A stretch of 64,000 bases of DNA from Utricularia gibba (GCA_002189035.1 NEEC01000002.1:3968001-4032000); one strand, 5' to 3'. Shown: positions 29,150 through 33,940, numbered from the stretch's first letter. Notes: generated by a model not told the origin, from the sequence alone. Translations and numbers: made by a program.

Positions 29150-30913
29150 TCTACTAATGCTTTGTAATACTCCCAGTCTGGATGGTCTTCATTCATTGGG
29201 GCTTGACCAATACGAAAATCATACACAAAGGATGGTACATCAGATGCATCTATGTGTCCTTCAAGAAAAGTCTTCATCCCAACCCCTTCCATAAAAGATG
29301 AATCTTTTTTATGATCCGTGTGCTTGTAGGAGTATGGAAATATGACATTGTCAACCTATTTGAGAACCAGTAGAGTTTAATTTAAACTAAAAAAATAAAA
29401 TTTAACTTATGAAATTTTTATTACCGGATTTGTTGTAGACTTGTATGGTGAATCATCTACCAACAAGGTATTACCATGTGTATACCGGCCATGAAAAGCA
29501 TCATCCTCCCATATTTTTCGCAACTCTTTCAGCAAAACCATACTTGCTGGCTTCTTGAGGACTCGAAGGTTTGTGGTGGTGCATTTCGTTCCATCCCATA
29601 TGAATGCCAAATTTGACATCTTCTCGCCAAACATCTAATTAATGACTTGGTTTAGTTGTGCACTGCTACAAAAAGAATAACATCTAAGATAATATAATAT
29701 TTTGTATGTTACCCTCCACGTGAGGACCATAGTGCAACATCAAAATGTTGCATACACCATTCCATAAACTCCCTAACATTTGGTGTTAGAAACACTGAAA
29801 ATATAACATATACAATAAAGTCAAGTCAATAAATTAGCAACTAACTATATGTTGCGAATGTGTGAAATACTAAATAAATACTATACCTGCTCGCCCATAA
29901 ATCCACTTATCTGGACGCCCTTTGATGGTTGATGATGAATGAAAAATAATATCAGAAAAAATACCATTGACGTCGAATACTACTAATTTCAGCACCGTTG
30001 GAATATGACTACTTGATTTAACGAAAGAAGGCCATCTGGATTGATACCATTTTAGTTGTTGCTTCAACGGCTCATTTTCAGCTGCCAAATCATTTGTTTC
30101 ATTGTCAACCGCCGCATCTTCGTGTAAATTATCAGCATCATTTCCACTTTGATCATCCACATCATCATCCTTCTTTGTAATCCTTTTTTTCCCACACCAA
30201 AACTTGGGTGTGCCTAAGATTCTAAAGATGAGAGGTAGGATTGTAGTCAATGACCTAGTATGTCCTTTAAAGAAAGCAATGAATTCATCAACGACATCCC
30301 TTGGTAACATCTCAACACTTAACAGTAAGCATAAGTAAATTAGATCAATAAAATCAGAAAAATTCTCATAAAAAAACATAGTATAAAATTTTTTTTAACA
30401 CATAAAATACCTTGTGGTTTTCCAATAAGATGAGAATTTGGAAGTGTGCGTGGGAAATCATTTGGTAAATCTTTAGGAGGAGAAACCCATACAAAACTTG
30501 TCCACCAACTATCATAGCCACTTCGTAGACCTTTCACTAATTTAATTGTAAACTTACCCTTTATCACATAATTTGGTGAATCCTTTATTCTACGACACAT
30601 GCTCATAGCAAAGAAAATAGGCAATTCTAGGGAAATGCTTTCCTCACAAGCAATGTAACCCATGCCAATATATATGCCACTCACTTAGGAGTCAAATGTG
30701 AAAATGGAATTTGAAGCATGTCAAAACTTGCAACATAAATGGTACCACTGGCACACGCAAGCCACATCTAAGGTGCTCAGTGCTGATAGAAAAACCCCTA
30801 GGAGCAACACGTTCTGGAATATCACCAACGATCTCTTCATCCTCTTCCTTATCCCACAATTGATATTCTGCAGGAATATTGAATCGAAGCCTCAACTTTT
30901 CTGATGTGTTCAT
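29150..30913 (-). pseudogene. MULE-borne fusion gene: Transposase_28-like domain plus FCP1/NIF HAD-like domain (copy 1)
   Basis: Exons ~30913-30411, ~30317-29887, 29794-29713, 29665-~29424, ~29360-29150; VFDVNGIFSDI, VFLTPNVREFMEWCMQHFDVALWSS, NTLLVDDSPYKS, IFPYSY...GQAPMNEDHPDWEYY; frameshifts in exon 1, TAG at 29635-29637. Confidence 0.85.
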
Positions 30914-30959
30914 CTATGCATAAAGAACAATGAAAATGGATACTTTCAAATCCATAAAC

Positions 30960-31520
30960 TGTAATAAAGCATTTCAGTGACTAAAATTTCATAATAAAAT
31001 AAATTTCGTATAATTTCATAGCCACACACCGTAATGAAAGCATTACAGTGACTAAAATTTCATAGCCACACACTACAATGAAAGCATTTCAGTGACTCAA
31101 CTTTCATAATAAAATAAGCGTCGTATAATTTCATAACCACACATCGCAATGAAGCCATTACAATGACTAAAATTTCACAATAAAATGAACTTCACATAAT
31201 TTTACAACCACACATCGCAATGAAAGAGATACAGTGCCTAAAATGTCACAATAAAATCAACTTCACATAATTTCATAGCCACACACCACAATAAAAGAGA
31301 TACAGTGACTAAAATGTCACAATAAAATAAACTTCGCATAATTTCATAGCCACACACCGCAATGATCGCATTACAGTGACTAAAATTTCACAATAAAATA
31401 AATTTCGCATACTTTCAAAGCCACACACCACAATGAACACATTACAGTGATGAAAAATACAAAACAAAAAAACATCTACATAAAGCCACGCACTGCAATG
31501 AACGAATTACGGTGACTACA
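30960..31520. repeat. Tandem array (alternating ~40/63-bp units) upstream of the accessory-gene ATG, in an inferred 5' intron
   Basis: Recurrent CATAGCCACACACCGCAATGAAAGCATTACAGTGACTAAAATTTCA. Confidence 0.88.
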
Positions 31521-32619
31521 AATCCAAAATATAATAAACATATGCATACTTTCAGAGCAACGTACCGCAATTATCACACAATACGGTGACGATAGTAAAA
31601 TAACGTTTCATATGCTTAGAGATCTTTGCACCGTAATTTCAAAATGAAAAAGAGTGGAGATACTTTCAGAGCAATGCATTGTAACAAACGCATTATAGTG
31701 ACTATAATTTAAAAAAAAAGAAAGCCATCCATCCTTTTTTAATTCACTCACAACATTGATCAATACAGTGACGAAAATTCTCAGATAAAACAAATCTTGT
31801 ATGCTTTCAGATCCTCGTGAAATAGAGAACCTAATACTATTGCCATTAAGATATAAAAAAACATAAACAAAAATTACACATAACCATACTTGTTCTGCGT
31901 GAAAAAACCTTTGAAATGTGAATATTGATACGGTGGTTGAAGAAGGAAGAGAAAAATGGTTAAATAAATTTTTAAAGTAATTAATTTGTTTTTTAAAACC
32001 CAATATAATAAATTCAGCAAAATTGTCTGTATGTTTTATCGAGAACCGAATGATACTTTTTCAGTCAAAGATACTGTAGCACGTGATAAGTGGAAGGCGC
32101 GCGATGTAAAATTTGACACGATTCTACTAAAAATAGGAGATTTATGGATGGTCACCGTAATTGAATATACGGTTATGAATTAATGTTTGAATATACGGAT
32201 GGTCACCCTATAAATCCATCTGATTAATGTTTTGAAGACGGGATTAAAAAATATGATCATATATTGAACATAGTTATGAATTACATATGATTTGCAACTT
32301 ATTACGATTTTTTTTACATACATGAATAAGATTCAAAAAAATGTGAAATTAATTTATGTAATTTTGATTATATCTTTGGATGCTCACTGGTTTCTCCATT
32401 GCGGTGTGCCGCCTATATTTCATTATCAGCCGACAACACGACAGCTACATGTTCCAAGATCAATAAAGTTTACTGACATGTGTCCCCATGTTTTGGACTC
32501 ACATGCCTCAATCACATGACCTAATTGTTCAAATTGAAAGGCTTTTGAAAACCATTCTTTCATCCCTCTTTAGAACCTCATCTTCTTGCAACCTCATTCT
32601 TACATATCTCTCTATTTGG

Positions 32620-33940
32620 ATGGCTTTCAGATCTGTCTCATACAACGTCTTCTTTGGAGGTCAAATCTATAATTACGGGAATTACGTAAGTTATAGTATG
32701 CCACCAATCCAATTTTTTCAGTCAGATGCCGATATTTCATTGGAAGAATTAAAAGTAAGGTTATATCAGATTGTTCAATTGTCTTCTTCGAGGTTCAATC
32801 TTAGATTATCAGCCCAGTTTTTTGATGTTGTGACTAGAGAAATGATGTATTTGAATTTAGAGACACAGAGTAACCTGGATTATCTTCATGAACCTAACCA
32901 GTTATTGCTCGGTGGATTTATTTGTGGAATACGACCCATTTTTTTCAAAAGAACCTCACACACAAATTGGAGACAACGGTAATGACTATTTCTTTCTTGT
33001 AAATTTCGAAATTATATATGTTTTTTTTAATTTTATGTTATTCTTTTTTTCTATAGATGAATATGTGGATTATGATTTCGGTCCAGTCCAAAATATTGAT
33101 GGCGATTCATTTATGTAATTCACTAATGAAAATGAGGTTCCCGATATTGATCATACTCCTCAAAACTCAGAAGGCGAAGAGAATGTGCTTGAAGGAAACG
33201 CAAGTTGTGATTCGGAATGGTTTCCTAACTCAGGTTTACATGATATAGAGGAAGAATCAAGTAATCATGGAGCATACACACATCAATATGAACCGAGATT
33301 CAAGGAAGGTGATCTATTTGAAGATAAAGAAGATTTTCGAAAACAAGTTAGAGAATTTTCCATTGAAATTGGAAAGGAGTTCACTGTTAGTGGCACTGAG
33401 CCTAGAGTCTTGGAAATGTATTGCAAACAACGTGACACTTAAAATTGTCACTGGAGGATTCGCGTAGCTCATTATAAACGATTGGGAAAATGGAAGATCT
33501 CAAAGCTTATTGAGCCCCACACATGCAAGCTGTAGGGGGCGAGATTCTTTTATCACATAAACATCAATCATGATTATATCTCTGAGATTGCCAAGCCATA
33601 TATTGAAGCAGACATTGGGACCAAAGTGAACTATTATTGCAGTTGTGTTGGATAGAACTGGTTATGAAGTACCGTACAAACGTGCATGGTATGGAATGCG
33701 AAAGGCCTTTGAGAAGGTGTATGGCACATTGGAGGAATAAGGAAGATGGAGTCACATTGCACTATTACTTCTGGGCGTTTGGACCATGTATACATGCCTA
33801 CCAGCACACCCGTCCGGTTATTTAAGTCGATGCAACGCACTTGTATGCGACATACAGGCACAAAATGCTCATTGCGGTGACCGTCTCTCAATGTGGAAAG
33901 ATTTTACCGCTTGCCTTTGCCATAGTAGCTGAAGAAACTG
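32620..33940 (+). pseudogene. mudrA: MuDR-type transposase, 3'-truncated by an Athila fragment
   Basis: FKEGDLFEDKEDFRKQVREFSI...C...CHWRIR...HTC (MuDR DNA-binding region); VDATHLYATYRHKMLIAV...ILPLAFAIVAEET (first catalytic Asp). Confidence 0.9.

Follow-up and report, generated by a model that had tools for sequence, protein, structure and literature searches.

The five-exon gene on the minus strand at 30913-29146 of a 64,000-nucleotide stretch of the Utricularia gibba genome (GCA_002189035.1 NEEC01000002.1:3968001-4032000; the window, in the coordinates of which all positions are given) is probably a dead copy of the accessory, non-transposase gene of a high-copy family of Mutator-like elements (MULEs), in which a TRP28 domain is joined to a captured NIF-type HAD domain. 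The encoded protein would consist of three parts, an N-terminal TRP28 part, an acidic linker with a short helix, and a complete NIF-type HAD domain. The gene would belong to an already known kind, that of transposon accessory genes made of host domains acquired by capture, and its architecture points to a previously undescribed kind of transposon helper protein with a function predicted from the sequence. That it is a dedicated transposon gene and not a one-off capture of the Pack-MULE type, as an earlier note on the same DNA had supposed, is upheld by its place in a high-copy unit, by a second, 45%-identical copy, by nonsynonymous differences far below synonymous ones and by the encoding of a whole host-type protein. 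The locus is a dead relic, the value of which is that of a pointer to a family.

The element and its five-exon gene

The element is delimited by terminal inverted repeats (TIRs) at 27919-27979 (plus strand) and 35827-35887 (minus strand), 61-nucleotide arms that are 74% complementary according to the repeat finder; in a gapped alignment about 150 nucleotides are similar, the left arm reaching to about 28050. A perfect 9-bp direct repeat, TGTCTGGGG, stands just outside the TIRs as the target site duplication (TSD), at 27913-27921 on the left and at 35888-35896 on the right, and the element ends are uncertain by about 4 bp, with GGGG assignable to either TIR or TSD. Long TIRs, here 61 to about 150 nucleotides, and a duplication of 9 bp, where 9-11 bp are expected, are consistent with a Mutator-like element, here about 7.97 kb in length. 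The TIR- and TSD-bounded MULE of the earlier note is thus confirmed.

Within these borders the gene is arranged head-to-head with the transposase gene mudrA at a distance of 1.7 kb, and its introns are all of the GT..AG type; the gene was recovered at or near the place where the earlier note had put it, with all the peptides quoted there present. Exon 1 (30411-30913, minus strand as are the following) encodes the TRP28-like domain and a 'WWTSFVWV' segment. Exon 2 (~29887-30317) comprises a family-specific segment, the acidic linker, the short helix and the start of the NIF-like domain, including a D-V-N-G motif I at ~29980-29969. The remainder of this domain is distributed over exon 3 (29713-29794), which extends over 28 codons from a 'VF..P' motif to 'WSSRGG' (motif II), exon 4 (29425-29665), which contains the core with the motif III Lys and the motif IV DD, and exon 5 (29146-29355), which provides the C-terminal third up to the stop codon.

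This copy is dead. Exon 1 contains a TGA at 30683-30681 and frame breaks at 30716/30715 and 30657/30656, and exon 4 an in-frame TAG at 29635-29637, in agreement with the relic status previously assigned to the gene on the basis of frameshifts and the same TAG. As other genomic copies have one extra base exactly at both frame breaks, these are private 1-bp deletions of this copy, which add up with the two stop codons to four lesions. When spliced at the predicted sites, the NIF part from exon 2 to exon 5 is in frame over 642 nucleotides, with the TAG as the sole defect. Exon 2 has no ATG conserved between the two copies known from the window, so that it would have to be joined to exon 1 for translation, and the exon 1-exon 2 join resembles a phase-1 intron in both copies, each with a lesion there.

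The neighbouring mudrA (32620-33943, plus strand) extends from the N-terminal region through the DNA-binding domain DBD_Tnp_Mut into the MULE catalytic domain, of which the first part is present, with many frame breaks. Its Pfam matches are sub-threshold (DBD_Tnp_Mut, E=0.034 at 33185-33442; MULE, E=0.11 at 33841-34059). Reading across the frame breaks reveals the usual N-terminal, DNA-binding and first catalytic motifs of a gene that, by its sequence, appears real, if badly decayed. A word-indexed search with the mudrA N-terminus retrieved a single Logan open reading frame (ORF) on a 1-kb contig, which is 73% identical over the N-terminal ORF and 70% identical as DNA. At about 33944 mudrA is interrupted by an unrelated repeat (33944-35461) that replaces its 3' two thirds, is about 90% identical to window positions 31-1601 and is related to 40630-41073. 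The repeat holds a gag-like ORF (33904-34284, minus strand).

The five-exon gene is flanked by tandem arrays. Two arrays, with units of 76 bp (4.5 copies) and 83 bp (2.6 copies) and a hairpin core CACTGTAAT/ATTACAGTG, lie 3' of the gene at 28373-29092, and a 71-bp array of about eight units with the common core ATTACAGTG separates the gene from mudrA at 30966-31558. The arrays on both sides have the inverted core CACTGTAAT/ATTACAGTG in common.

The two halves of the predicted protein

With respect to the N-terminal half, the match of exon 1 to the Pfam profile PF04195 spans profile positions 3-31 only, the domain being split by a frame break, and the pieces of the second copy did not match PF04195. 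A protein-language-model search with the first 73 residues led to land-plant PF04195 clusters with a score of 0.96 (200 of 256 features, 76 of 100 matches); the same kind of search with the second half of exon 1 was negative. TRP28 has conserved positions at G21, P25, L34, P46, N47 and F55 (PMC11963269). The second copy, which has no frame break in this region, reproduces their spacing exactly as G, L, L, P, R and F, and the first copy, once the base present in the other copies is restored, as G, P, L, P, K and W. Substitutions are thus confined to N47, which is K or R, P25, which is L in the second copy, and F55, which is W in the first. Weaker but consistent, these signals suggest a TRP28-like N-terminal part, a designation that makes no claim of Pfam membership. 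Of the Transposase_28-like domain postulated earlier, the likeness holds by language-model neighbours and residue spacing, with the Pfam score remaining under the gathering cut-off.

TRP28 has been reported solely from antisense ORFs of Retand long terminal repeat (LTR) retrotransposons, without similarity to other transposons, and has been predicted to bind DNA and to occur often beside tandem arrays (PMC11963269, the only paper on TRP28 found in a literature search). The position of the arrays prompts the idea that the TRP28-like part may bind them. A word-indexed protein search with a profile of the N-terminal exon gave no match among proteins of 0.55-1.75 times the query length, a range outside which fusions of about 490 residues fall. 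Elsewhere in the window, a Retand-like layout is seen at 12020-15200, with the SH3 end of a Gypsy integrase at 12020-12340 (plus strand; PF24626, E=1e-4) and an antisense coiled-coil ORF at 13116-13601 (minus strand; TMF_DNA_bd-like, E=4e-6). A stretch upstream of the latter that looked like TRP28 by eye (14486-15169, minus strand) was not confirmed by Pfam or BLASTP and was dropped.

The C-terminal half is more firmly placed. Compared singly with the Pfam NIF profile, the exons remain below the cut-off at 13-15 bits, with matches in order at profile positions 35-62 and 81-126 (exon 3, E=0.07 at positions 35-61). A profile of exon 4 built from both copies retrieved from a database of 5.8 billion sequences 34 plant proteins (best E=7e-10), most of the longer of which contain PF03031. 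A hidden Markov model (HMM) made from eight such host NIF proteins was run on the 2,763 stop-free six-frame segments of the window and recognised exons 3, 4 and 5 of this copy with E-values of 2e-5, 1e-15 and 2e-8 (exon 5 at HMM positions 126-189) and those of the second copy with 1e-6, 8e-12 and 1.5e-8, collinear in both cases. The collinear E-values and the occurrence of two copies rule out chance ORFs. As the host proteins match the Pfam NIF profile end to end (positions 1-160 of 160, E-values of 1e-19 to 3e-21), the whole domain is covered by way of these relatives, with which the transposon protein aligns from the first to the last residue at 34-36% identity, exon 5 reaching their extreme C-terminus. 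Both signals anticipated in a Pfam check, PF04195 and PF03031, are therefore present, with exon 1 and the single NIF exons below the Pfam cut-offs.

The host gene of Eleusine, located between an ABC transporter gene and the gene for ribosomal protein L13 (RPL13), has the exon limits of exon 3, and three of its introns, one preceding 'VF..P' and the others following 'WSSRxx' and '..NP', are placed as in the NIF part of the transposon gene, in addition to which Eleusine has two more; the last of the three, after exon 4, is common to host genes. Introns at host positions suggest that genomic DNA and not mRNA was captured, and the introns shared with host genes rule out a retro-copy as the origin of the NIF part.

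Two further NIF-like loci were noticed. In the window, a third, very decayed relic on the plus strand at 19831-19995 and 20043-20150 reads '..NIFLVDDSSYKKILNT' followed by '..LQGVLHANDVEYC..', the two matching in order positions 101-122 (E=0.021) and 139-166 of the host HMM; tblastn detected neither a TRP28 part nor a transposase near it. In Taraxacum kok-saghyz, a divergent NIF-like gene with the motif I 'LDVNA' and intron places partly unlike those of the grass host gene is situated among zf-MYND genes (L001, 9843-10649). The Taraxacum protein P0012 was rejected as a transposon-borne relative since its neighbourhood is not transposon-like.

The domain is complete, as proposed in the earlier note, with a motif I that departs from the DxDxT expected of HAD phosphatases: both copies have D-V-N-G at this place and the host donors D-L-N-G, with the first Asp retained, the second replaced by Asn and the Thr replaced as well. 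In HAD phosphatases the Asp two residues past the nucleophile acts as the general acid/base. The nucleophile Asp, the motif II Ser ('WSS'), the motif III Lys ('KEL') and the motif IV 'DD' are retained in both copies and aligned with the host family. The presence of DxNG in donor family and copies makes a normal, fast phosphatase unlikely; a binding or slow-turnover role is more likely for such a motif, and TIM50 is an example of the NIF fold serving as a binding module.

These observations bear on the FCP1-like phosphatase acting on the C-terminal domain (CTD) of Pol II or Pol V which the earlier note had considered. An active FCP1/SCP-like enzyme that dephosphorylates the CTD of Pol II, IV or V, and thereby favours transposon transcription or blocks RNA-directed DNA methylation, would be consistent with the NIF fold, with the four retained catalytic positions and with the structural neighbours. 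The AlphaFold model of a host member, although modest (predicted local distance difference test 60, predicted template modelling score 0.65), has SCP2, TIM50, SCP1, SCP3, UBLCP1 and CTDNEP1 as its best folds, among them SCP1-3 bound to CTD peptides. On the other hand, the DxNG is a feature of both copies and of the whole donor family, and the lost Asp is the general acid/base, the corresponding D98 mutants of SCP1 being used as trapped states according to the titles of the structures. Moreover, the only solved relative by sequence profile is UBLCP1 (E=0.0036) rather than an FCP1 or SCP protein, and FCP1 ranks 44th by fold. An active CTD phosphatase is thus very improbable; FCP1-like CTD phosphatase activity is not supported by the sequence, and this part of the earlier proposal is weakened.

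A second copy, selection and copy number

On the minus strand at 53414-55415 the gene occurs a second time, in a diverged form whose exon plan is unchanged and whose NIF part has the same three introns; the NIF-part exons of this copy are at 54276-54165, 54079-53998, 53926-53683 and 53611-53414. It is interrupted by one stop within the region of TRP28, by a frame break in exon 1 and, close to the C-terminus, by a TGA. In both copies the NIF part, once spliced, can be read in frame across four exons with one stop each. Between the copies, identity amounts to 59% in the N-terminal exon, 45% in the NIF part and about 28% in the linker; intron identity, meaningless for short AT-rich introns, was not used. 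For this one copy pair, the method of Nei and Gojobori gave proportions of nonsynonymous (pN) and synonymous (pS) differences of 0.349 and 0.743 in the NIF part (209 codons) and of 0.251 and 0.720 in the N-terminal exon. With pN well under a saturated pS, both lineages would have encoded a functional protein during most of their separate history, which, read from the sequences, argues that the gene evolved under purifying selection.

A small tree separates the two copies, as one clade, from the host proteins (support 92/84), which fits a single capture, and the copies have derived features in common, namely the DVNG motif, a 'FDVALWSSRGG' stretch, the loss of a 'PDLPW' stretch and two introns fewer than the host. 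MULEs readily capture host DNA, and a passive capture in the manner of Pack-MULEs, of a host gene or of a TRP28-NIF host chimera, possibly repeated and without use, would account for a NIF part taken with its introns from a host gene, for the death of both copies and for the lack of RNA, the low dN/dS then stemming from host paralogues that existed before capture. What speaks against it is that both copies preserve the host-type protein in its entirety, with four exons in one reading frame, instead of a fragment, that the element has its own transposase gene and that the two copies with their common derived features stand as one clade apart from all host proteins. In addition, TRP28 has been reported without similarity outside transposons (PMC11963269), and a host protein with both TRP28 and NIF did not turn up in searches that were limited by protein length. 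Passive capture is consequently unlikely.

Copy number is indicated by the contigs of four U. gibba DNA runs aligned to 27900-33800 at a likeness of at least 80%. The runs contributed 1361, 5311, 375 and 251 contigs, with a likeness ranging from above 99% to below 90%, and gene, spacer arrays and mudrA are covered to a similar depth. Transitions from C to T and from G to A dominate among these contigs, as expected of methylated, silenced repeats. The high and even depth rules out a one-off capture; the gene travels with a high-copy element.

The setting of the second copy is of a different kind. A repeat finder, blastn and local alignment detected no TIRs, TSD or mudrA near it. It is located, together with other repeats, between two parts of a hAT transposase gene that lie 8.3 kb apart on its strand, the N-terminal half at 57456-56715 showing BED-like and core motifs by eye and the RNase-H-like part at 48358-48050 matching PF14372 (E=2.8e-12). 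The arrangement is more suggestive of the insertion of a block into a hAT element than of a hAT carrying the gene. Hairpin-rich repeats, for example CCAGACACCC..GGGTGTCTGG units, are present on either side of the copy at 52146-52577 and 56100-56660, and inverted arms at 52542-52573 and 56200-56231 surround it; the core is unlike that of the arrays of the first copy.

Such a nested position between two halves of a transposase gene, together with the hairpin-rich repeats on either side of both copies, could mean that the gene and the arrays on its two sides move, or are moved, as a unit of their own, inserted once in a MULE and once in a hAT, so that the link with the MULE is accidental. Inner TIRs or a TSD are found around neither gene copy, however, and the depth, about equal over gene, spacer and mudrA, is that of joint amplification. 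Head-to-head genes with a common spacer are moreover typical of two-gene MULEs such as MuDR, and this is the layout seen here. A nested unit is therefore improbable. A broader proposal would be that TRP28 proteins are an accessory system common to plant transposons of unrelated kinds (Retand LTR elements, MULEs and hATs) which recognises adjacent, element-specific tandem hairpin arrays, and that the DNA-transposon version brings a captured DxNG pseudo-phosphatase to the element to hold or block a phosphorylated transcription or silencing factor of the host. Such a scenario is rather unlikely; if true, it would amount to a novel device that counters silencing or directs targeting at the protein level.

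Under the preferred reading of a dedicated MULE accessory gene, the NIF part would come from the genomic DNA of an ordinary plant gene of the NIF subfamily with a D-L-N-G motif I. The capture would have retained three donor introns and placed the first coding exon of the donor downstream of the transposon-specific part in the same reading frame, and the fusion would have spread with transposons under purifying selection until two lineages at 45% identity had arisen. The TRP28 part may bring the protein to transposon DNA or chromatin, with the flanking tandem hairpin arrays as possible targets, where the NIF-like part may bind, or very slowly dephosphorylate, a host phosphoprotein. The result would be a tuning of the expression, silencing or integration of the element, with cutting and pasting performed by the transposase and not by the TRP28-NIF protein.

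Several points weigh against this reading. The function proposed for the TRP28-NIF protein is a prediction from sequence. Exon 1 scores 18.2 bits against PF04195 (E=0.003), below the cut-off of 26.2, and the exon 1-exon 2 junction is out of phase in both copies as they stand, so that a single spliced exon 1-exon 2 mRNA is a prediction. No contig of four U. gibba RNA runs aligned to the element at 80% likeness. Searches of protein databases, the word-indexed ones limited by protein length, found no intact family member, and the full architecture rests on two pseudogenes. The DNA contigs are short and do not link the parts, and their depth is not a copy count. The dN/dS between the copies of about 0.13 or less, where a value of about 1 would have spoken against an accessory gene, derives from a single pair with saturated dS and is to be read as an upper-bound-style estimate, and the selection may have taken place at a time when the gene was not part of a transposon. 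Finally, the second copy is outside any recognisable MULE.

Searches beyond the window added little. A RNA run containing the stretch was not found. The 169-residue ORF of exon 2, compared by HMMER with 1.84 billion representatives, had a spurious immunoglobulin-repeat protein as its sole match, and a protein-language-model search with exon 2 was uninformative. A metagenome scan with the exon-4 profile yielded one short locus in an unrelated context. Other features of the window, as judged by eye, are two apparent host genes, an exostosin-like glycosyltransferase ORF (22591-24061, minus strand) and a stress-responsive A/B-barrel (Dabb)-like ORF (62560-63165, plus strand), and a 277-residue ORF with Copia-type gag and pre-integrase motifs (43577-44410, minus strand).

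Comparison with known systems

Transposon accessory genes are rare windows on the dealings between element and host, and the few plant cases are mudrB, VANC and the ULP1 of KAONASHI. Many copies and purifying selection, which mark an accessory gene, are both seen here, by contig depth and in one copy pair, respectively. KAONASHI-type MULEs carry a host-derived ULP1 protease domain, amplified with the element and selected beside the transposase, to which the present gene can be likened. In contrast, the KAONASHI domain is a Peptidase_C48 cysteine protease, whereas the HAD domain found here is of the NIF type and altered in its catalytic motif, and KAONASHI lacks TRP28. The gene also resembles mudrB of MuDR and vanB/vanC of VANDAL elements in being a second, non-transposase MULE gene, arranged head-to-head with mudrA as in MuDR. 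MURB is thought to act in integration and VANC in anti-silencing; neither mudrB nor vanB/vanC is related to the present gene in sequence or possesses a recognisable captured host domain. In the literature search no paper joining NIF/FCP1 domains with MULEs was found.

With Pack-MULEs the gene has in common the MULE-mediated capture of host genomic DNA with introns. Pack-MULEs have no transposase gene, however, and usually contain gene fragments, whereas a whole protein, a TRP28 fusion and the remains of mudrA are present here.

As to the captured part, the plant 'DLNG' NIF-like host proteins (for example rice Os03g0755800 and proteins of Panicum, Eleusine and Arundo, automatically named TIM50) are homologous over the full length of the NIF part of exons 2-5, with the DxNG motif I, motifs II-IV and the three intron positions in common. 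Unlike the transposon protein, they begin at the NIF domain, lack TRP28 and are encoded in ordinary gene neighbourhoods. UBLCP1, SCP1-3 (CTDSP), CTDNEP1 and TIM50 share the NIF fold, with SCP2, TIM50 and SCP1 at the top. Active NIF phosphatases have DxDxT, and TIM50 is a binding domain without the catalytic residues; the family described here stands between them, having kept the nucleophile and lost the general acid. The unstudied plant NIF subfamily with the DxNG motif is thereby brought to attention.

The closest parallel to the N-terminal part is provided by the antisense ORFs of Retand LTR retrotransposons (PMC11963269), which likewise have an N-terminal TRP28 (PF04195) domain with the same spacing of conserved positions, a coiled or helical segment after TRP28 and tandem arrays beside the gene. 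The carrier there is a Gypsy element and here a DNA transposon, a MULE; the gene described here has introns, and its captured NIF-like C-terminal domain is absent from the extra domains listed for Retand. In the U. gibba element, TRP28 would accordingly be carried by a DNA transposon, in a selectively maintained fusion with a NIF-type domain of host origin, and the two halves suggest separate jobs, recognition of DNA or chromatin and binding of a phosphoprotein. Living members of the family, if they exist, would link TRP28 proteins across transposon classes.

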